From contig CATNEN010000012.1 of NCBI GenBank assembly GCA_950097015.1, forward strand, positions 1,240,001 through 1,304,000: a DNA stretch of 64,000 bases. The letters are read 5' to 3'. Both the position numbers and the translations under genes were made by a program. This document shows positions 30,027 through 45,372 of this stretch, piece after piece. The notes below the pieces were generated by a model. The model made no database searches. It was given only the letters and a program-made list of their open reading frames with translations, and had not been told where the DNA came from. The first letter of the stretch is position 1, and every line of letters starts with the position of its first letter. The stretch comes from Macrostomum hystrix (Eukaryota > Animalia > Platyhelminthes).

Positions 30027-32899
30027 TCAGGTAGAGGGTGCGTTGACGGAACGGACGAGCGGGTGGGTCGACGGGACGGGATCGGACGGGTCTAGGACCG
30101 CTGGCTTTAGCCGGTCCACGGAAACATGGTCCTGACGCGTGCCGAGATCGAGAAGGAAAGTCTTGGTGTAGCGCTGAAGGACTCGAAAAGGTCCGGTGTA
30201 TGGTTTCTGGAACGGCGCGCGGTAGCCATCCCGGCGGATGAACACAAAGGGGCATGTAGCCAGGGCGCCCAACTCCGATGCCTGTCGGTTGCCATGTGGG
30301 ACGGTCGGCTGAGGACGGAAAGCTTGAATGGCGGCGCGCAGGTTGGTGAGGAACGTGCTGTGCAGTGCTGTAGGTGGGCCAACCTGTATGCACTCGCCAG
30401 GCAAAAGCAACGGGGCGCCATACACCAACTCGGCCGACGACGAGTGAAGGTCCTCTTTGGGTGCCGTCCGGATGCCCAACAGGACCCACGGCAACTCGTC
30501 CGTCCAGTTCGGACTGGAAAGGCGTGCCATGAGTGACGCTTTGAGCTGGCGATGGAAACGCTCGACTAAACCGTTGGACTGCGGGTGAAACGCTGTGGTG
30601 TGATGCACGTGCATGCCGAGCAGTTTGGAAACGGCGGTCCACAGTTCGGAGGTAAAATTCGGGCCCCTGTCGGTGGTGATGTCACTGGGGACTCCGAATC
30701 GAGCGATCCAGGTAGAAATGAAAACGGATGCACAGGCGCTGGCGGACGTGTCAGTGATGGGTATCGCCTCAGGCCAGCGCGTAAAACGGTGCGTGAACCC
30801 ATCGTGACCATCGTCAGCAGGTGCGTGAACCCGTGGGACTGCGGCAGGGGACCAACAAGGTCGATGTGGACGTGGGCGAAACGGCTGGTCGGTACCGGGA
30901 TAATGTCCGGCGTTGTCGTGTTATGCCGATGGACCTTGGCTTGTTGGCACGGAAGGCAACAGCGAGCCCACTGGCTCACGTCTCGGTTGAGACCTGGCCA
31001 GACGAATTTAGCTGCGATGAGGCGACGAGTGCTGCGGATGGAGGGATGGGCTAATCCGTGGACCGCATCGAAAACGGCACGACGGAAACTCACTGGCACC
31101 AACGGGCGCGGGCGCCCGGTCGACATGTCACAAAGCAATTCCAAACCAGGATGCATGGTGACGAGCTCGAGCCTGAGCCTGAGGCCGTCGGCATTACCAG
31201 CTGGTGCTGCTCCTTCGCCAATGCCGCATAGTCCACTCCTGGCAACAATGTGTGCACACTTGCTACTGTGCAACGGGATAGAGCGTCTGCAACTGAGTTG
31301 TCCTTACCGGCGACGTGTCGAATGTCCGTGCTGAACTCCGACACTGACGCTAGATGCCGCTGCTGTCGTGCGGACCAAGGATCCGATAACTTGGACATCG
31401 CGGATGTCAGCGGCTTGTGATCCGTGTAGATTGTGAAAACGCGTCCTTCGAGGAAATAACGGAAGTGCCGTGTGGCCAAATATAGCGCCAGTAACTCCCG
31501 GTCGAACGCACTGTATTTCTGTTCCGCGGGACGCAATTGTCGGCTGAAAAAGGCGAGTGGTTGCCACCCGCCAGCAATTCGCTGAACCATGCGAGGCGTC
31601 GACGGTCAGGGCCGTCTGCGCAGTGGGCCTAGGGTGTGCCAGTAAAGTGGACTGAGCTAGGGCCTGTTTGGTGGCGGTGAAAGCATCGAGTAGACTGGGC
31701 GTCCACTGCACAAGTCGGCTCTTACTGGCAATGGCGGCGTAAATGGGGCGTAGCAACTGGGCGGCATGTGGAACAAATCGGTGGTAGAAGTTCACCATAC
31801 CGGCGAATTCTTGCAAGCCTTTGATTGTGGTCGGAGGTGCAAACTTGACGACCGCATCGACCTTGTCTGGCAGAGGCCAGGCGCCGCTTTGATTGATTCT
31901 GTGGCCCAAGAAATCGATCTCGGTACGTCCGAACTGGCATTTGGCCGGATTCAACAGCAGACCGTTGTCGACTAGGCGGCGGAACAAGGTGCGCAGGTGC
32001 TCCACGTGCTGCGTTTGGTCGCTGCTGGCCACTAGGAAATCGTCCAAGTAGGCGAAAACGAAAGGCAAATCCTGGCTGATAGAGTCCACGAGTCGCTGGA
32101 ATGTCTGTGCAGCGTTCTTGAGTCCGAAAGGCATGCGGAGGAACTCAAAGAGTCCAAACGGTGTGATGATGGCCGTTTTAGGGATGTCAATTTCCGCCAC
32201 TGGTATCTGGTGGTAGCCTCGGACCAGGTCAATCTTTGAGAAAATGGTACTGCCGGCCAGGTGCGCGGAAAAATCCTGAATATTCGGTACCGGGTAACGA
32301 TCGGGTACAGTGGCGCCATTGAGCCGTCGGAAATCGCCGCAGGGACGCCAGCCTCCAGACGACTTCGGCACAATGTGGAGCGGTGATGACCAGGGGCTGT
32401 CGGACCGACGAATGATGCCGAGCTGTTCCAGGGTACGGAATTCCGCTTTAGCTATGGCCAACTTGTCGGGTGCTAGGCGGCGTGCGCGGGCATGGGTTTG
32501 GGGGCCTTGCGTCTGAATGAAATGTTCGACGCCGTGGCGTGGTTGTGCCTGTTAAAAACTCGGCTCCGTGAGCGACGGAAACTCCGCCAGCAACGTACTG
32601 TACGGGTCGCGGGCGACGGCGGCCGCCAGCCGAGGTGCTGTGCCGCAACCGAGGAGCAGATGTGTGCTGGCCAGTGAGTGGGAGTCCAGCAGGCGGCGGT
32701 TAGGTAAGTCGACCAACAGTCCGTGGTGTAACAGGAAATCAGCGCCGATGAGGGGGCGCGACACTTCGGCAAGAATGAAAGGCCAGGTGCAGGTTCGAAC
32801 GCCAAGGTCGAGAGTGATGGTGCGACTGCCAAATGTACGGATCGGGCTGCCGTTGGCGGCGAGGAGCGGTGGTCCAGGGGTGATTGTACGCGCATCGAC
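30027..32899 (-). pseudogene. pol: Gypsy pol (protease C-terminal half, RT, RNase H, integrase) with small indels; protease N-terminal half lies at ~45251-45370
   Basis: FLVDTGAEV; [32 protein letters not shown]; ELLA..TDHKPL; HIDLVGPLP; HPQSNGLVERFHRQLK. Confidence 0.93.
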
Positions 32900-34370
32900 A
32901 CTTCCCGGTCCGCAACAACCACGCCAGCTACCGAATTTTTAATATTGCCTGTGCCACATCTACAACTTAACAATTTCTGTAAAGCGACCTTAGTTAAGCG
33001 TGTGCCATTGCTTTTCGGTGACCTTGTAGGCTGGGCTTCGACGCTGGGGGTGATTAAAAAACCCGGGAATGTAAAATACGGTTGCTGGAACGGTAGATGT
33101 TATTTTGTAACGTGACAGTGAAAAGGAGATGTGTGCCAATTATAAATTCTTGAACTTGGGACCAAAATACAACAAATAGGTAAAAAAAGTGGCAGCTGTT
33201 TGGCTTTCAGGCTTTTTTGTTCAGTGTGAAAGGTAAAAATATAGATTTTTTAAACAAAAATCGGTTGCTGCAATTTACTCAGTGTGGCACAGTTGTGCCA
33301 ACTCGAAAATATTGACCTAAACGAAGGTATCCATGTGTGCCATACTTCAGAATACATTTACCCACAACATTTCACACCTTTTTGGCAATTTTGTTGTGAG
33401 CAGACAATCGGAGCATAATAGCACAAATATTTTCGTTGCATGATCAAGCTCTTGTACGATTATAGCGAGCAAGACTAATGCACATAAAATAAATAGTGCG
33501 AATAATAAAATACCTTACCATTTGGTTAGCAGCATAAAGCCTTTTTATACTGGTGTTTGTTTACTTCGATAGAAAAGAATAAATTCAAAATTCAAGACGT
33601 TGACCACCCGAGCTACTTTAAACTGCGCAAAGCAAATAAAATAATAGGAATCTCGAATATTGCCTTCCTCCTATGGGCTTATATATATTTTTGGAGGAAT
33701 CTCGAACATTGCCTTCCTCCTATGGGCTTGTATATATTTTTGTATATATACTTATATTTATATTTGTATATTTTGTATATATATATATATATATGTACTC
33801 TATAATTTAGTAAAGGTGGTGTTCTAATTTGTCGAAATATTACAGATCCTATACTAGCTATAAGCCTTGCAATGCCTTAGTTGCCTAGTTGAGGGTGAAG
33901 ATGCATTTTTACAATGTATGTAGTATTTATAATATAATGCATGCTCCACGAAGTTAATGGTCCTTCTAAATATAGCTTTTTTCTATGGCCTTCTCTAAGC
34001 TGATTTTATAATAGGCCTTTTCCTATAGAAAGGATACTATACTATAAAAAACCTCTGCTAAGTTGTTTGCTTACCCAAAAGAAAGCAAAAGTTGTTTGCT
34101 AAAGAAAAGTAGGCTAATAAATGGATGCATAATTGTGAATATACAAAGATCCATCACCATGTTAATAATGATAGGCATAAAGGTAAATCTTGAAAGTCTA
34201 GTCTATTAATGTAAAAGGATTTATTTTGTCTATAATTAACCAAGGTGTTCTTTTGTCACATTGGTTTTTGGGGGTAAACTTTGAAGAAAAGTATACTGGT
34301 AGCAATCTTACTAAATATATTTAGCAGGAATCAAAATGTTGCACTGCAAATGATATTTTGGATTTGATAC

Positions 34371-34982
34371 TTCGATCCAGCTTGTAACAACTCGATCCAA
34401 CCTCAATCCAACTTCGATCCAACTTCTAACAACTCGATCCAACCTCAATGCAACCTCGATCCAACTTTAATCCAACTTCTAACAACTCGATCCAACCTCA
34501 ATCCAACTTCTAACAACTCGATCCAACCTCAATGCAACCTCGATCCAACTTTGATCCAACTTCTAACAACTCGATCCAACCTCAATCCAACCTCGATCCA
34601 ACTTTGATCCAACTTCTAACAACTAGATCCAACCTCAATGCAACCTCGATCCAACTTTGATCCAACTTCTAACAACTCGATCCAACCTCAATCCAACCTC
34701 GATCCAACTTTGATCCAACTTCTAACAACTAGATCCAACCTCAATCCAACATTGATCCAACTTTGATCCAGCTTGTAACAACTCGATCCAACCTCAATCC
34801 AACCTCGATCCATCCTCAATCCAACTTCTAACAACTCGATCCAACCTCAATGCAACCTCGATCGAACTTTGATCCAGCTTGTAACAACTCGATCCAACCT
34901 CAATCCAACCTCAATCCAACTTTAATCCAACTTCTAACAACTCGATCCAACCTCGATACAACCTCGATCCAACTTCGATCGA
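34371..34982. repeat. Tandem 9/11-mer mosaic in the left TIR
   Basis: TCGATCCAACC, TCAATCCAACC, TTGATCCAACT and TCTAACAAC units, often grouped as ~53-bp blocks. Confidence 0.95.
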
Positions 34983-35129
34983 AGTATATTGATTATCGAA
35001 TATGATGAAGCATAGCGAAGTGTTATCATATATCCGCCAGTTCTTGTCTTCAGTTTCGTTTATTTATTGTTATTTATAGTTTCGCCTCCTTTCAATTTCA
35101 ATTTCAGGACCTTTCAGTTTTGGTCCACC

Positions 35130-38100
35130 ATGGCGGATGATTCTTTAAGTAAGTTTACAACGGCTCAGAATCTGGGGCGTGAAAGGCGTAGTTGATATAC
35201 TATACGAGTATAGTACATTCGTTTTTTATTCGTCTCTCCTTATTCTAGAACGGCAACTGACTCGTTCAAGTCTGCTTGATTTCTTCAAGCTGTGCGGTAT
35301 TGACCCTGAGGAGTATATTAGTTCTCCACTTCCTAGCCATCGTCGGTCAGATGACGATCGCTTGCCGCGTCTGTGCAGATTTTTTCACGTTCCTCCTTCT
35401 GATGTAAACAAAAAGTACGTCTATACATTTCTGCTACGTAATTACAAGGACATTTCTGAGGACGTTCCCATCGAAACAGCTGAATGTAACGCAGACTCTT
35501 CAACTGATGAGACGCGCTGCATGTAAGATAGCCTTTTTGTTTCACGTACTATTTCTGCATGCCTGTTGCGAACTGTCCGTGCCCTTTATTTAGTCAGATG
35601 TCATTGGCAGATGACATTGGCACTGACAATGTCTTCCTTTAAAACCATCTCTTTTCAGTTCTTCCTCCTCGACAATTCTGCCTATCTTCCACCAGAGCTT
35701 CAGCGAGCCCGCAGGACTTCTCCGTGACGGTGTTTTAAAGCCAGATTGGTTCAGCGACGTGGTTCGCCTTTTTGCTCTTTCGGTTGAACCGTGCTGTCTC
35801 GCGAAAAAAGTAGGAAAGTTTCGCAGAAAGACGGGGATTCATTACGCTCATGTCTACTGCTGCGAGCCTACCTGTCCAGCAACGTTTATTGTGGAAGCCA
35901 AAGATGCGAGTTTGACATCATGGGAACTCCGGACAGTCACTGCGCCATTGGAGAACCACCCTGCGGCTCGAAGTCGGCGGCTGACTGGTGAACGGCGATA
36001 TAAGCTCGCGAGATCGACGCTGGTTTCGAACTCTTACAGGGTCGCAGCGGCCATTGCCGCCAACGAACCCCTCAGTGAGGTGCCTTCGTCAGAGGCCCTA
36101 CGCATTGCAGCTGAGCGACTGCGCAGAGCTGAGCTGGGAGTTCCAGACATGGATGACCTGATAAAACTGCGCCGACTTGAGAGGGTCCTACAACCCGCGT
36201 ATATCAGAAAGGTTATCCAGAGTGAGGGTCGGGCCGAGACCATCATTCTATTCCATTCCCGTCCCTTTCAGAGTCTACGGGAGATGCAGCTGAGGGGCTG
36301 GCCCATACGTATGGGAATGGATTCAACTGCTGCTCCAATCCATCAGCGCCCCAGCAGTTGCACCAAGCCCATCTACTATCACGCTCTGGTGCTTCAGAAC
36401 CCTACCGTTGGTGGGAAAGTGATGCCATTGTTGGAGATTCTATCGACATCTCAGACAGGAATCACCCTGCGCTTTTGCCTGGACGTTTGGTTTAGAGAAT
36501 GTACGACATTTTTGTCAACAGTTCGCGTTTCGCAGGTGGTTACAGACTTCAATTTTGCCACTTTACACGGACTCATCGGCTGCTTTCATGGTCTATCGCT
36601 GTCGCTCTACATCAAAGAATGCTTTCATCACTTGACTAAGGACAGCGATTGGGATCCCCTTCCTGTCATCGGCCTTGGCCGAAGTCATCTAGTCAAGGAG
36701 ATGACTCGCTTGAAGGAAGTAACCAATTGCAGTAACAGGGCAGTCAAACAGTTCTGGCTGCGGTCTATGGCGTGCATGGTAGCGATCGACAGCATTCAAA
36801 CAGCTGACAGGCTGTTGAGAGCCATCTACCTTGTGCTCATGGCTCCTACGGAAGCCGTAGTTGAAAGAATGGATCGGCATCTAGGATGTTGTCCGAAAAA
36901 AATTTCTAAGAGTAATGAGCAACATGGAGAGCGTCCGTGCCGAGTTCGAGACTGGATCAAGAGACGAACGAATCTTCACAAATAGAAGTCAATGCAGACG
37001 GAACCATAATGCGCCGGTCCCCATTCTGGCAGCGGGCTGAACAAATCCGGCAAGAAGTTCAACTGGAAGTGAGTGCACTGCCGTTTGACGAGTCTACTGA
37101 TAGTCTGAACGCCTATGTATGTCCGGCTTTGGCTGAACGCATAACCAATACATTCACTCCGTATCTCCCTCTTATCTGCGGCATTATGCCCAGCAGTTCA
37201 CGATTTACGGAGGGGCACACGGAGCGCTGGATTGGCCTTATGAAGAACAGTGTCTTTGAGAGTAAACAAGTCAGTCTCTCTGAGTTCATCCAGGCGCTCC
37301 ATTCTCATCACAATGGGAACGAAATTCTGTTCAAGAGAGACATGTACCGTGTAACAGGTGTGACTTCTTTGGAAGAAGATGATATTGAAGAAGAGCTGCA
37401 GCCACCACAGCATTCGCCACCAGCGTCAGAGTCGCAGCGAGAGCAGCATTCGCCACCAGCGTCAGAGTCGCAGCCAGAGCAGCATTCGCCACCAGCGTCA
37501 GAGTCGCAGCCAGAGCAGCATTCGTCACCAGCGTCAGAGTCGCAGCCACAGCAAGGTGCGCCAACGGTGCCATTGTCGAATAAAACCCGGAAACGAAAGT
37601 CTGACATCTTTTGTCCAATGGTCAACTCTCAACAGGCTCGGCCTGCAGATGTCCCGCTGCAACCTGTAGTAAACAAAAAGCGTCGTCTACCGGCTTATGT
37701 ACCGTCGGCAAGTAGTGGATTGTTCATTATTTATTGCATTACGTATTTATTTTCTTGTATTTTATATTACTCTTTATTATTAATGTATTTTACATTTCAT
37801 TTATTTCATTTATTGCAACGGACATAACGTACACCATAAGTACAATGGTCTACGTAGGACAGTGCTTATTGTTTCGTCAGTTGGTGGCCATTTAACAGAC
37901 GGTGATAACTTTGTGTTCCTGTTCCATTTCTCTCTTGTAGACTTCCAGGACCTATCCTTTAGAGGGAAGACCACCTCGACAGGCATTGGAATTTGCCACG
38001 TTGAGGAACTCCGGTTTGGCTACTGGTGTGCCAGATTCTCGAGGCGGATCTATGAGCGTATACGTGTACAACGCTTGCACAGCAGACAACTTGCTCACGG

Positions 38101-39010
38101 CCTTAACCATAGCCTATCTGGATGAACCTGGATTCAAAGCAAGTCTCCAACATATTGTTGAGGATCCATTGGTAGTTTTTTCTGAACGAAGCATCGCAGT
38201 CCACCACCGAGAAGCAAGCTTTGCATGCACGAGCAAAGCTTCTTCTTCAACTCGACGCATTCAGCAGTGAACGTTTCATCAGGACAAATCAGAAAATCGA
38301 AATTGGCCTCTTCGGCAGTGAGCTTGACGTATGTATGAAGCTCCTTGGTTCAAAGCACAGACTAGTGTATCAAAGCCGGTGCCTCAACCCGCGTTGCCCA
38401 AATCCAGAGCAACTTTCCTATGGACACGCAATCACTATTGGAAGTAACTGTGCAGCTGGAGGCACAGTCGAGGATTATCTGCGAGATTTTCTTTCTTCTG
38501 AGTCCTATGGGCCGTGCTCAGTCTGCGATCACGTGCGTCGAAGTCAGGCTCCGAAGTTTCAGTTCAGCCCTCCGCCGGTTCTAGTCATCTCCTCCACAGA
38601 CTCTGATCCATTGGGCGCCAGCCGAGCTGCCCCTTCTCAAGTGGTTCGCCCCTTTTCGGACTGCAGTATTCAGTAAGAGAGAAACGTAGTATTCTTAGTT
38701 CATTTTTAAAGGCTCTACATATCGCTGTCTTGCATGCACTAATACATAAGCATTGCTAACTTTACTTCTATGCTGTAACGGCAAATTCACAATCTTCAGA
38801 TATCAACATCGTGCTACAACTTTCAAGGAAGGGGGGCACTATTTGTCCCGCATCTGGTACGCCTCAGGAACTATTAAATACGACGACTTGGCAAGAAGCA
38901 AGGGTGTCATGACCGCCGCTGTAGAGCGTGGACGCCAGCCACCTCTGGGAAACAGGGCTAACCTGTACATTTACACGATTACTAACTCGGAGGAAACATC
39001 AGGCCAGTAG
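35130..39010 (+). CDS. Spliced foldback gene 1: MULE/NOF-like DDE transposase with a C-terminal USP-like cysteine-protease domain; carries frame breaks
   Basis: CCACCATGG start. GT-AG introns 35149-35248 and 35523-35658 join three frames in phase. Candidate D (MDST, 36320), D (VTDF, 36545), xRSH and E (TERW, 37222). Later exons contain NACTADN, two CxxC-type pairs and GGHY..YDD. Confidence 0.72.
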
Positions 39011-39940
39011 CGATACAATTTGAGACCGATTCTGAATATATTAACTTCGATCCAGCTTCTAACAACTCAATGTAACGTGAAACAACTTCAATCCAACTTT
39101 GATCCAGCTTGTAACGACTCCATCCAACCTCTCTTCTTGTTTATAGGCAGCCGTTTTCTCCAAAAGTTGTTGTACAGTTAGCTACGTGTGTCAAGGCACA
39201 AGTGTACGTGCTGTATTTACTGCCAGTTTCTTTTTATTGAATCAATAGCATTTACCACCTTTTGTTAGTGAAAAGCACAGAGTAAAAGTTGATTGAAATG
39301 TACTGAAATCACAATTTGTTCAGTCTTTTTTTCATTGAGGCACCCGAACGTGCACATTCACCAAATAAATTTATTTTTCTTTTTCGTGAAGGTGACAGCT
39401 GTCTAATAAGAAGTACATTCAAAGTACAACATGTATTATTGCGTAACATTGCGTAATTAGCTACTGCGAAAAATTACTACACTAGAACCGTACGTAAAGC
39501 GAACAACTGAACCAGGTTTTCAAGCTTAGTCAAACAAAGTTCATCAGTCCTTGTAAAATAGAATTAACGTCGAAAAACTCGCAAAAAGTATATATTAAAT
39601 GAACGAAAGCAGGGACGTGCATTTTAAGTATCAGGGTATATAGGAAGGGTAAATAGATACATATTTTGTATCTGTATAGAGGCACAGACAATTGGGGACC
39701 TCAAGACTTTTGTCACACTTTTGTCTGAAGTACATAGAGCTTATCTATACATAGTTAGTGACTATAAACTACTGTAGGAAGACAAGTTTATAAACATCAT
39801 TACTTGATTTGAAACTAGACAAATAAATGTAGGATACGTTTTTGTCAGAAAAATACGACTTCAGGGTTACTAAGATGCCTGCAACGGAGACGTAAAAATG
39901 TACTAGCATACCTTTTTAAGCACATTACCATATGATTTTA

Positions 39941-42537
39941 TTACCGATTATTCTTGACCAACTGCAGACGCTGCCGCAATGCTCGTTTTGGAGCTAAGGG
40001 ATCTGTCCGACTGAGTATCTCCATATTTCGCTTTCTCGTCTTTGTAACCAGCTGCTTCTTCCTCTCTTCCTCTTCCTGCTGCTGCTTCCTCTCTTCCTCT
40101 TCCTGCTGCTGCTGCTTCTTCCTCTCTTCCTCTTCCTGCTGCTGCTTCTTCCTCTCTTCCTCTTCCTGCTGCTGCTTCTTCCTCTCTTCCTCTTCCTGCT
40201 GCTTCTTCCTCTCTTCCTCTTCCTGCTGCTTCTTCCTCTCTTCCTCTTCCTGCTGCTGCTTCTTCCTCTCTTCCTGCTGCTTCTTCCTCTCTTCCTCTTC
40301 CTGCTGCTGCTTCTTCCTCTCTTCCTCTTCCTGCTGCTTCTTCCTCTCTTCCTCTTCCTGCTGCTGCTTCTTCCTCTCTTCCTCTTCCTGCTGCTTCTTC
40401 CTCTCTTCCTCTTCCTGCTGCTGCTTCTTCCTCTCTTCCTCTTCCTGCTGCTTCTTCCTCTCTTCCTCTTCCTGCTGCTGCTTCTTCCTCTCTTCCTCTT
40501 CCTGCTGCTTCTTCCTCTCTTCCTCTTCCTGCTGCTGCTTCTTCCTCTCTTCCTCTTCCTGCTGCCGCTCGTCCGCATACAGTTGGTTTCCGTTCTGTGT
40601 TCGTCGTCGCCGCCTTTGAGGCATTCGCTGCATGCTAGACAAGCAGCGAATAAAAGCAGATAGTGTTCGGAGCGCAGTGATGTCGGCGACAGCAATCAAC
40701 TGCCGAATATCGTGCAGTACCTGTTGACGCAAACGCTGTACCGGCCGACTTGAAGGCAAGCGCCAAATTGCAGGCTGACGGCGCGAAGAGAAAGAAGCAT
40801 TTTCAGTCGGACTTAGAACTGTTGGATGAACTGCTGCTTGCAACCAAATATTCCGGGTGTCCGGAAAGTCATGAGAAAACTACAAAAGGTTAATTATAAA
40901 AACGCGCAGAACAGTGAAACTTTACTAATCAGTAATGTAATTTCCCCTGAAGTCAATCACAGCTTGGCAGTGCTCCACGAGCCGTAGAACCTCGCGTTTC
41001 AAGCAGTTTGCATCCAGACCCCTCGCCCACTGCAACGCGGCCTCGCGGACCTCATCGTGGCTGCTGAACTCCCGCTTCGAGAAGTCCGATTTCAGCCAAT
41101 TGAAGAAAAAACGGTCGCATAAATTGAAATCAGGGCTGTAGGGACTCTGAAAAAGCAGTTGAACTCCACGAGTCTCCATGTACTGCTGCACAGGCTGGGC
41201 CACATGAGGTCGTGCGTTGTCCCACTGCCACAAGACTTCGGACAGATGAATTGGCTGTGATCTGAGGCTCCGCCATAGGTCACCTGTGTGTCGAACGAAT
41301 TCAACGATGCGATTGGCATCAACAGTCTGCTTTGGCGCCGTTGACATGATAGAGAATCGCTTGCTTGGGGTGAAAGCGACTACCAGCATTGTCTTTGGGT
41401 CCCCGACTGAGTGTCTCACAACTTGAGGTCGATGGTCGCCTTGACCCAGCCAGCACCGGTTGTTCTGCCGTGTACCAGTGTTTTAAGGTACACCCACGTC
41501 TCGTCCTCCACCACGTACTTGTTGCAGAAGCTGGTCATGCCCTCGGTATGAAAAATCCGACGTATTTGCTTGGCACAATTGACGCGAGCAACCTTGTTCT
41601 CCTCGGAGAGAACATGCGGGACCCACACGGCAGACACATTGCGAAGTTGCAGGTCTTCAGTCAATATTTCATGCACTGTTGATTTCCCAACCTCCATGAA
41701 GTCAGCAAGATCTCTGACACTCACTTTTGGGTCTTCTTTCACGAGATTTCTGCAGGTCTCGATCAGCTCTGGTGTTCTCGTCGATCTCGGCCGGCCAGTA
41801 CGGGCAGCTTGGGCCAGTGGGTACGACTCGTCACGGAACCTTGTGTACCATCGGTACACTGACGACAGACCAGGCGCCACATCTCCATGCACTTTCAGCA
41901 GTTCTCCATGGCAATCAGGAGCAGATATACCAAGCTTATACCTGGTATAAGCATAAGCTTGAAACACGTCCATCTCAAAGCAGCAGCAAGGATCAATGAA
42001 GAAAAAAGTAACGATAGATGCTTGCTTTGCCTCTGCGTTGCAGTGGCCTAGACTTCTAAGTTATAACCATCAGCCTTACCCCCAAATTTGAAGCAAGAAT
42101 CTAGCTCTTTCAGCCATAGACATATATTAAGTCAAGTGTTAGAATGGTACAGTATCTTGTCAATAGCTTGTGTCTAAGTAGTTAGAATAACACATTCTCA
42201 TGACTTTCCGGACACCAGAAGTAGCTCCGTTTCTTCTATGCTCCGCCTGGCACTTTCCACCGCTGCCGTAAACACTGTGTAGGAAGGCTGCTTTAGTCGA
42301 ATCAGCGACCAGCTGTACGACAGCAACTTGATCGTGACCGCATCGACGGAAACCTTCGCGAACTCGAATCTTCAGGGCACTAAAAGCTCGAGTACACGCA
42401 CAGAGACGTTGACAAACAGTGTCAATTGCTTGGCCGTCAGACAGAGAGAAGACAACAATAGACGGCAGCGTAGGACAGGGTAAAACAGGCCCGGGATCCG
42501 GAAGGTCTGCGTCGCAGGAACTCTTCAGCAGCTTCTC
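39941..42537 (-). CDS. Foldback gene 2 (unknown protein with an E/K/Q repeat), split by mariner
   Basis: From the acceptor TTTTCAG at 42538, segments 42537-42222 and 40848-39941 total 1224 nt, giving 407 stop-free codons plus a stop. Confidence 0.6.
40054..40565. repeat. 27/30-bp microsatellite-like repeat (EEEERKKQQ(Q) on the minus strand)
   Basis: CTTCTTCCTCTCTTCCTCTTCCTGCTG(CTG) units. Confidence 0.95.
40851..42221 (-). mobile_element. Mariner (DD34D) transposon, 1371 bp
   Basis: TA TSDs at 40849-40850 and 42222-42223. TIR core GGTGTCCGGAAAGTCATGAGAA at both ends. Confidence 0.95.
40925..41973 (-). pseudogene. Mariner transposase with one frameshift near 41485
   Basis: WVPHVL, EDETW, WDNARPH, YSPDFNLCD; 34 residues separate the second and third Asp. 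Confidence 0.95.
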
Positions 42538-42637
42538 CTGAAAAAGTGTGAAAAGAAATAAACGAAACTGAAGACAAGAACTGGCGGATATATGATAACA
42601 CTTCGCTATGCTTCATCATATTCGATAATCAATATAC

Positions 42638-43779
42638 TTCGATCGAAGTTGGATCGAGGTTGCATTGAGGTTGGATCGAGTTGTTAGAAGTTGGATTGAG
42701 GATGGATCGAGGTTGGATTGAGGTTGGATCGAGTTGTTACAAGCTGGATCAAAGTTGGATCAATGTTGGATTGAGGTTGGATCTAGTTGTTAGAAGTTGG
42801 ATCAAAGTTGGATCGAGGTTGCATTGAGGTTGGATCGAGTTGTTAGAAGTTGGATTAAAGTTGGATCGAGGTTGGATTGAGGTTGGATCGAGTTGTTACA
42901 AGCTGGATCAAAGTTCGATCGAGGTTGCATTGAGGTTGGATCGAGTTGTTAGAAGTTGGATTGAGGATGGATCGAGGTTGGATTGAGGTTGGATCGAGTT
43001 GTTACAAGCTGGATCAAAGTTGGATCAATGTTGGATTGAGGTTGGATCTAGTTGTTAGAAGTTGGATCAAAGTTGGATCGAGGTTGGATTGAGGTTGGAT
43101 CGAGTTGTTAGAAGTTGGATCAAAGTTGGATCGAGGTTGCATTGAGGTTGGATCTAGTTGTTAGAAGTTGGATCAAAGTTGGATCGAGGTTGCATTGAGG
43201 TTGGATCGAGTTGTTAGAAGTTGGATTAAAGTTGGATTGAGGTTGGATTGAGGTTGGATCGAGTTGTTACAAGCTGGATCAAAGTTCGATCGAGGTTGCA
43301 TTGAGGTTGGATCGAGTTGTTAGAAGTTGGATTGAGGATGGATCGAGGTTGGATTGAGGTTGGATCGAGTTGTTACAAGCTGGATCAAAGTTGGATCAAT
43401 GTTGGATTGAGGTTGGATCTAGTTGTTAGAAGTTGGATCAAAGTTGGATCGAGGTTGGATTGAGGTTGGATCGAGTTGTTAGAAGTTGGATCAAAGTTGG
43501 ATCGAGGTTGCATTGAGGTTGGATCTAGTTGTTAGAAGTTGGATCAAAGTTGGATCGAGGTTGGATTGAGGTTGGATCGAGTTGTTAGAAGTTGGATCAA
43601 AGTTGGATCGAGGTTGCATTGAGGTTGGATCGAGTTGTTAGAAGTTGGATTGAGGTTGGATCGAGTTGTTAGAAGTTGGATTAAAGTTGGATCGAGGTTG
43701 CATTGAGGTTGGATCGAGTTGTTAGAAGTTGGATCGAAGTTGGATTGAGGTTGGATCGAGTTGTTACAAGCTGGATCGA
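42638..43779. repeat. Same tandem mosaic, inverted and about twice as long, in the right TIR
   Basis: GGTTGGATCGA and GTTGTTAGA units. Confidence 0.95.
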
Positions 43780-45372
43780 AGTATCAAATCCAAAATATCA
43801 TTTGCAGTGCAACATTTTGATTCCTGCTAAATATATTTAGTAAGATTGCTACCAGTATACTTTTCTTCAAAGTTTACCCCCAAAAACCAATGTGACAAAA
43901 GAACACCTTGGTTAATTATAGACAAAATAAATCCTTTTACATTAATAGACTAGACTTTCAAGATTTACCTTTATGCCTATCATTATTAACATGGTGATGG
44001 ATCTTTGTATATTCACAATTATGCATCCATTTATTAGCCTACTTTTCTTTAGCAAACAACTTTTGCTTTCTTTTGGGTAAGCAAACAACTTAGCAGAGGT
44101 TTTTTATAGTATAGTATCCTTTCTATAGGAAAAGGCCTATTATAAAATCAGCTTAGAGAAGGCCATAGAAAAAAGCTATATTTAGAAGGACCATTAACTT
44201 CGTGGAGCATGCATTATATTATAAATACTACATACATTGTAAAAATGCATCTTCACCCTCAACTAGGCAACTAAGGCATTGCAAGGCTTATAGCTAGTAT
44301 AGGATCTGTAATATTTCGACAAATTAGAACACCACCTTTACTAAATTATAGAGTACATATATATATATATATATACAAAATATACAAATATAAATATAAG
44401 TATATATACAAAAATATATACAAGCCCATAGGAGGAAGGCAATGTTCGAGATTCCTCCAAAAATATATATAAGCCCATAGGAGGAAGGCAATATTCGAGA
44501 TTCCTATTATTTTATTTGCTTTGCGCAGTTAAAGTAGCTCGGGTGGTCAACGTCTTGAATTTTGAATTTATTCTTTTCTATCGAAGTAAACAAACACCAG
44601 TATAAAAAGGCTTTATGCTGCTAACCAAATGGTAAGGTATTTTATTATTCGCACTATTTATTTTATGTGCATTAGTCTTGCTCGCTATAATCGTACAAGA
44701 GCTTGATCATGCAACGAAAATATTTGTGCTATTATGCTCCGATTGTCTGCTCACAACAAAATTGCCAAAAAGGTGTGAAATGTTGTGGGTAAATGTATTC
44801 TGAAGTATGGCACACATGGATACCTTCGTTTAGGTCAATATTTTCGAGTTGGCACAACTGTGCCACACTGAGTAAATTGCAGCAACCGATTTTTGTTTAA
44901 AAAATCTATATTTTTACCTTTCACACTGAACAAAAAAGCCTGAAAGCCAAACAGCTGCCACTTTTTTTACCTATTTGTTGTATTTTGGTCCCAAGTTCAA
45001 GAATTTATAATTGGCACACATCTCCTTTTCACTGTCACGTTACAAAATAACATCTACCGTTCCAGCAACCGTATTTTACATTCCCGGGTTTTTTAATCAC
45101 CCCCAGCGTCGAAGCCCAGCCTACAAGGTCACCGAAAAGCAATGGCACACGCTTAACTAAGGTCGCTTTACAGAAATTGTTAAGTTGTAGATGTGGCACA
45201 GGCAATATTAAAAATTCGGTAGCTGGCGTGGTTGTTGCGGACCGGGAAGTCGCATCGACCCCGGATGCAGGAAAAAGACTCACTTCTGCACCGGTATCCA
45301 CTAGAAAACGCCGACCTGTGTGTATGTCCGGGATAAGCAAAAGATTGTTGTTCTCGCCGGTCGTCGAGGTGT

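Follow-up and report, generated by a model that had tools for sequence, protein, structure and literature searches.

A candidate ubiquitin-specific protease-like domain spliced to the transposase-like part of a Mutator/Foldback-type element in Macrostomum hystrix

Several unrelated transposon superfamilies have independently taken up ubiquitin or SUMO proteases, namely OTU, Ulp1, VTD and the UCH domains of Helentrons. OTU or Ulp1 domains occur as fusions with the transposases of Ginger (Ginger1) and Mutator elements, and in Trichomonas an IS5-like transposase carries a fused peptidase C19 domain (PMC2836005). An OTU domain is present in the Mutator element MuDR-6_HM (PMC6446971), UCH domains are stably carried by Helentrons (PMC11417382), and the VTD domains of Helitrons are active deubiquitinases (DUBs; PMC9741609). 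Here we describe a stretch of 64,000 nucleotides from the flatworm Macrostomum hystrix (contig CATNEN010000012.1, positions 1,240,001 to 1,304,000 of the forward strand), referred to below as the window, which holds a DNA transposon of the Mutator/Foldback type at 32900-45250. One gene of this element encodes a transposase-like part followed by a C-terminal tail, and this tail is probably a very divergent and compact thiol protease related to the ubiquitin-specific proteases (USPs; clan CA, C19-like). An earlier note on the same DNA had remarked that the proteases of Mutator-like elements (MULEs) are usually of the Ulp1 or OTU type, which agrees with the published record (PMC2836005, PMC6446971). 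Because the MULE surveys consulted list only OTU, SET, PHD and similar extra domains and no USP-type ubiquitin protease (PMC6446971, PMC13359780), a USP-like tail on a Foldback/Mutator transposase appears to be unreported in the literature searched. That transposons carry ubiquitin-family proteases is established; this combination would be new. As in the fusions of Ginger1, Mutator, IS5-like elements, Helentrons and Helitrons, the putative thiol protease lies C-terminal to, or beside, the transposition enzyme within one open reading frame (ORF). It differs from them in that its partner is of the Mutator/Foldback type and in that the domain is far more divergent than the cases detectable with Pfam.

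The tail comprises the C-terminal ~255-310 residues of the protein and is encoded by exons 4 and 5 (37941-38672 and 38800-39010). When the region 37940-39010 is read in all three frames, a Cys-box-like segment is found at 38058-38105 (V-Y-V-Y-N-A-C-T-A-D-N-L-L), with the TGC codon at 38076-38078 and a helical 'thumb' stretch following it in exon 4. Further along the same exon lie CLNPRC (38380-38397), TVEDYLRDF (38464-38490), CSVC (a CxxC pair, 38515-38526) and FSPPPVLVI (38563-38589, with PPVLVI from 38569). Exon 5 contributes GGHY (38831-38842, with GHY from 38834 and the His codon CAC at 38837) and YDD (38879-38887, GAC codons at 38882 and 38885). The Cys, the two Cys pairs, PPxLxI, the His and the Asp are colinear, in the order of the USP Cys box, fingers, His box and Asp. 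Each of these motifs had been listed in the earlier note (Cys 38076, CLNPRC, CSVC, FxxPPxLxI, His 38837 and Asp 38882), and our reading found all of them in place and in the USP order proposed there. About 100 aa separate the Cys from the first pair, 40 aa lie between the pairs and 13 aa between the second pair and PPVLVI, and the His is followed by the Asp after 15-16 aa; these spacings look USP-like, which is a lead only. To our knowledge, among DUB classes only the USPs combine the order of Cys, two-pair zinc ribbon, PPxLxI, GHY and aromatic-Asp-Asp. With the USP/C19 families (UCH PF00443, UCH_1 PF13423) the tail shares a Cys at what would be a helix start, the two-pair zinc ribbon, PPxLxI, GHY and an aromatic-Asp-Asp ~16 residues on.

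In the six-frame translation of the whole window the His/Asp-box pattern and the 'fingers + PP-strand' pattern occur once each, both of them in the tail. Residue-shuffled windows contained 0.0 (strict GHY) or 0.34 (relaxed) His/Asp patterns and 0.275 fingers-plus-strand patterns per window, and the GHY..[aromatic]DD hairpin was not found in any of 200 shuffled windows; these figures give an order of magnitude only, because the patterns were written after the sequence had been seen. A tblastn search revealed no second copy of the module within the window. Nine residues before the candidate Cys lies an SRGG (38037-38048), which resembles the RGG at the C-terminus of ubiquitin. By chance alone a protein of this size would contain about 0.3 such sites, and the one here may well be accidental; a function as self-processing site is speculative.

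For the gene model, contigs from four public runs were aligned to 35100-39100. The exons of the gene and its third and fourth introns are as follows.

35130..35148, plus strand: exon 1, with the ATG at 35130 (MADDSL...), an upstream in-frame stop at 35013, and the joint 35148>35249 giving the junction codon AAA
35249..35522, plus strand: exon 2, N-terminal region with no recognised domain; a contig of run X2 spans exactly 35249-35522, with GT..AG joints on both sides
35659..37707, plus strand: exon 3, transposase-like part; the frame is continuous after the contig changes at 36896 and 36951
37708..37940, plus strand: intron 3, 233 nt, GC-AG, GC content 0.32, phase 0; joint 37706/7>37940/1, GCAAGT..TTGTAG
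37941..38672, plus strand: exon 4, part 1 of the USP-like module; an X2 contig runs from 37940 to 38672 exactly, its T-run at 38176 being shorter by 1 nt
38673..38799, plus strand: intron 4, 127 nt, GT-AG, GC content 0.35, phase 2; joint 38672>38800 giving the junction codon CAA
38800..39010, plus strand: coding part of exon 5, part 2 of the USP-like module; stop codon at 39008-39010

All four joints in the X2 contigs (35522-35659 in addition to the three given above) are in frame. From the first to the fourth, the splice ends read GTAAGT..TAG, GTAAGA..CAG, GCAAGT..TAG and GTAAGA..CAG, i.e. three GT-AG introns and, in third place, one GC-AG intron; the second joint gives the junction codon ATT. 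Further X2 contigs terminate exactly at these exon borders. According to this in-frame joining across four introns, module and transposase-like part share a single ORF, a connection that the earlier note had considered plausible. The introns it had placed at 37712-37940 and 38640-38798 do exist, and only their exact borders had to be changed, to 37708-37940 (GC-AG) and 38673-38799 (GT-AG). The exons have GC contents of 0.46-0.52, except for the 19-nt exon 1 (0.37), and those of the introns are 0.32-0.41.

In the assembled window the module falls into three parts: a frameshift near 38176 shifts it from frame 0 to frame 1, and the AT-rich gap at 38673-38799 isolates the part with the His box. 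Compared with the contigs of X1 and X2, and of X6 at the positions that this run reaches, the window has one additional A in an A-run at 36896, lacks CT after 36951 and has one additional T in a T-run at 38176. The frameshift in the module, which had been noticed before, corresponds to this last T, absent from the short-read contigs of three runs. The three differences are exactly those which restore a continuous frame, and probably they are not true frameshifts but mistakes of the assembly at homopolymers or dinucleotides. When they are applied, the coding sequence (CDS) is open from the ATG to the stop codon and measures 3285 nt (1094 codons plus stop). The codons for the candidate Cys, His and Asp are identical in all aligned contigs.

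Unspliced X2 contigs are also present across introns 2, 3 and 4. The type of this run was guessed to be DNA, but the simplest explanation for four exact GT/GC-AG joints, found next to unspliced contigs at comparable depth, is cDNA. The spliced contigs might also stem from a processed DNA copy; in both cases a single spliced ORF unites the module with the transposase-like exon. If intron 3 is retained, the frame continues for 40 codons to a stop at 37825-37827, and a transposase-only product ending there is a speculative consequence.

Several findings weigh against assigning the tail to the USPs. When it is compared by eye with the PROSITE-type USP signatures, the Cys box is without the G..N..C[FYW]xN..LQ pattern and the His box without the HxGx(4-5) loop; N-x-C plus a hydrophobic helix and G-H-Y appear to be all that is kept of these patterns. 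The first zinc pair is Cx4C and not CxxC, and the Cys-His distance of ~212 aa would make the core smaller than that of any USP known to us. Searches of Pfam, PDB and the ESM-Atlas used the individual exon pieces. None of the pieces matched UCH (PF00443), UCH_1 (PF13423), C98 (PF15499) or any other Pfam family at E<=1 or even at E<=10. These blanks are not a failure of the tool, since the same library detects DDE_3 and HTH_48 in a neighbouring mariner transposase. In a phmmer search of PDB with three USP-like pieces (E<=10) no USP chain was found, and the matches obtained (polyphenol oxidase, nitrile hydratase and antibody chains) were chance matches. Word-index protein searches with the 151-aa and 164-aa middle pieces were blank as well, and phmmer (HMMER) with the 151-aa piece revealed no true relative among 1.84 billion protein representatives. 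Since even the self match is missing there, the gene family is absent from this collection. An AlphaFold2 single-sequence model of the 164-aa piece had a pLDDT of 38.6 and was unusable; it was run without an alignment for want of homologues. The sole independent support for USP membership comes from the neighbours found in the ESM-Atlas feature search. All 10 family-bearing neighbours of the 151-aa middle piece were UCH (PF00443/PF13423) with scores of 0.86-0.90, and UCH families were the only ones named for the non-overlapping 78-aa Cys-box piece (0.81-0.83), these scores resting on 105-140 of 256 shared features and being leads only according to the tool. It is unlikely that two separate pieces arrive at the same UCH family by chance.

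The proposal of a USP- or deubiquitinase-like domain in the earlier note is partly supported, by the order of the motifs and by the UCH-only Atlas neighbours, and it finds no USP match in Pfam, PDB or the large databases. The domain, known here from its motifs, differs from the described USP/C19 families by the missing match to any hidden Markov model (HMM) or sequence, by its non-canonical boxes, by the Cx4C pair and by a core that is short at ~255-310 aa. Viral and metagenome contigs contained no related loci, and a look-up of the exact exon 5 product gave no record. The only three phmmer matches in the 1.84-billion collection, down to E=2.6e-10, were giant bacterial Flg_new_2/WD40 repeat proteins; they were rejected because each of them is the sum of 4-8 weak stretches. 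Repeat proteins can mimic significance for a Cys-rich query.

The blank HMM, PDB and large-database searches would also be expected if the tail were an orphan Cys-rich zinc-binding domain without a protease fold, serving in DNA or protein binding or in multimerisation, and if its USP-like order were coincidental. The non-canonical Cys and His boxes, the unusable single-sequence fold model and the definition of the motif patterns after sight of the sequence point in the same direction. We nevertheless consider such a domain rather unlikely: four separate elements follow one another correctly and at USP-like distances, UCH is the only named Atlas family for each of two independent pieces, and the GHY..[aromatic]DD hairpin did not arise in the shuffled windows.

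An assignment to another papain-like DUB class appears improbable. The tail would then be OTU-like with a zinc-ribbon insert, or belong to a new clan-CA family; its substrates would still be ubiquitin-like modifiers, or it would cleave the fusion protein at SRGG, whose position shortly before the candidate Cys would suit such a function. As a lead only, N-A-C-T-A-D-N-L-L resembles the OTU-type box ('D/N-x-C + helix') about as well as the USP box. OTU is moreover the protease class known in a MULE, MuDR-6_HM (PMC6446971). However, no piece matched OTU in Pfam, the named Atlas neighbours are UCH and not OTU, and it is in USPs that the stretch from Cys to His holds two Cys pairs and then a PPxLxI strand.

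MULEs capture fragments of host genes (PMC5499845, PMC8277862), and the module might accordingly be a captured, decaying host USP fragment (Pack-MULE-like cargo) with no function for the element. This is very improbable, because two introns with consensus sites connect the module in phase to the transposase ORF, the CDS is open throughout, and there is no detectable similarity to an ordinary, host-type USP, although a recent capture would be recognisable. The spliced contigs speak against a separate captured host fragment, which the earlier note had brought up.

Other classes were rejected on their motifs. A SWIM finger has a different Cys spacing, and in the PNGase/transglutaminase-like core the zinc ribbon precedes the Cys. 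Ulp1 (peptidase C48) needs the order His-Asp-Cys, whereas the order here is Cys..His..Asp, and no match to Pfam PF02902 was found. VTD requires an invariant Asp-x-His motif (PMC9741609), whereas in the tail the His stands in G-G-H-Y and the Asp follows 15-16 residues later.

The part of the protein preceding the USP-like tail is encoded mainly by exon 3. By reading, this exon contains a Cys/His-rich N-terminal segment (35792-35962), candidate catalytic Asp residues at 36320 (D221) and 36545 (D296), which are 75 aa apart, a CFHH (CxxH, 36620-36631) 25 aa after D296 and, about 226 aa further on, a TERW/E motif (TERWIGLMK-type, 37204-37245). Between this core and the tail lie an acidic Ser/Pro (P/S/E/Q) linker at 37408-37553, built of a 12-aa unit present four times (a 36-nt unit repeated 4.1 times), and basic runs at 37582-37599 and 37672-37686 that resemble nuclear localisation signals. 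Because the short-read contigs break at 37408-37553, a variable copy number of the linker repeat is suggested. The exon pieces did not match MULE, Transposase_mut or FLYWCH of Pfam at E<=10, a word-index protein search with a 379-aa transposase-like piece was blank, and the AlphaFold2 model of a 412-aa piece, run without an alignment, was unusable (pLDDT 36.8). Since the Pfam and word-index searches were blank, the label 'transposase' rests on the architecture of the element and on the motifs. A 256-nt contig of run X5 (organism label C, from a different study and guessed to be RNA) is 100% identical to 36485-36740 in this exon; the match could reflect presence in another sample or species, or contamination.

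The gene is located in an element of 12,351 bp (32900-45250), whose borders and repeats are the following.

32891..32899, no strand: left copy of the target-site duplication (TSD), 9-mer cgcatcgac, directly outside the element end
32900..34983, plus strand: left terminal inverted repeat (TIR), 2.1 kb, arms 100% complementary
39043..39133, plus strand: two internal copies of the TIR repeat unit (repeat family D4), 82-85% identical to the repeat unit of the left-hand array
43168..45250, minus strand: right TIR, arms 100% complementary
45251..45259, no strand: right copy of the TSD, identical 9-mer cgcatcgac

The two TIR arms pair perfectly over 2.08 kb (32900-33621 with 44529-45250, and 33618-34983 with 43168-44533), and the inner part of each arm consists of a 53-nt tandem array (34372-34980 in the left arm). 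The TSD is perfect on both sides, and its 9 bp lie in the 8-10 bp range of the Mutator superfamily (PMC5499845, PMC3169594). Long TIRs built from subterminal repeats, together with TSDs of 8-10 bp, are the design of the foldback-type Mutator elements Muta1 and Tm1 (PMC5499845, PMC3169594). The element is a young DNA transposon of the Mutator/Foldback type, and it looks active because the TIRs are 100% identical, the TSD is perfect, the CDS is open and spliced products are seen.

With the foldback Mutators Muta1, Tm1/Phantom and Rehavkus/NOF the element shares the 9-bp TSD, the TIRs of subterminal repeats and the Cys/His-rich N-terminus of the encoded protein; the design of TIR and TSD is the same as in Tm1 (PMC3169594). 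By reading, a candidate D..D pair 75 aa apart would fit as well, and so would a candidate C(2)H motif lying 25 aa beyond its second D, within the 15-45 aa at which (C/D)(2)H follows the second D in Mutator-type transposases (PMC5499845). In contrast to these elements, it has no match to MULE or FLYWCH in Pfam, no relatives found in the databases searched, far longer TIRs (2.1 kb) and a second, convergent gene. The linker and the USP-like tail make its protein about twice as long as that of Muta1 (504 aa).

The internal copies of the TIR unit at 39043-39133 stand in direct orientation just 3' of the stop codon, deep inside the element; they might serve there as binding sites for the transposase or be left over from growth of the array. 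The convergent second gene is interrupted by a mariner-type transposase on the minus strand (40925-41973; Pfam DDE_3, HTH_32 and HTH_48), beside which it has a long E/K/Q-rich repeat of 27/30-nt units at 40051-40569. A scan of the whole element against Rfam revealed no family.

From the motifs we infer a USP fold for the tail with some confidence, and isopeptidase activity is roughly an even call. In such a fold the catalytic Cys (38076) would sit at the start of a helix, Cx4C and CxxC would form the zinc-ribbon 'fingers' insert, and the His of GHY (38837) and the Asp 15-16 residues on (38882/38885) would complete the triad. By means of the basic linker runs the protein may enter the nucleus, where the tail could strip ubiquitin or a ubiquitin-like modifier as a thiol isopeptidase. 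Its substrates could be the transposase, the transpososome, or chromatin and repair proteins in the vicinity. The transposition machinery would in this way be shielded from ubiquitin-dependent turnover or silencing, as has been suggested for the OTU and Ulp1 domains (PMC2836005) and the VTD domains (PMC9741609) of other transposons. More tentatively, the tail may be the founding member, in the databases searched, of a minimal and extremely divergent USP-fold family that is invisible to current HMMs and forms an obligatory C-terminal domain of an active Foldback/Mutator lineage. DNA transposons would in that case have recruited a DUB or a protease of ubiquitin-like modifiers independently once more, possibly with self-processing at SRGG.

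Should the tail prove not to be a protease, what is left is a well-preserved element of the Foldback/Mutator type whose protein ends in an orphan domain. Among the ubiquitin and SUMO proteases carried by transposons, biochemical support is limited to VTD. If the tail is indeed USP-like, the active-looking fusion with a transposase would be a convenient system for studying the role of deubiquitination in cut-and-paste transposition, and the sequence space of the USP fold would be extended.

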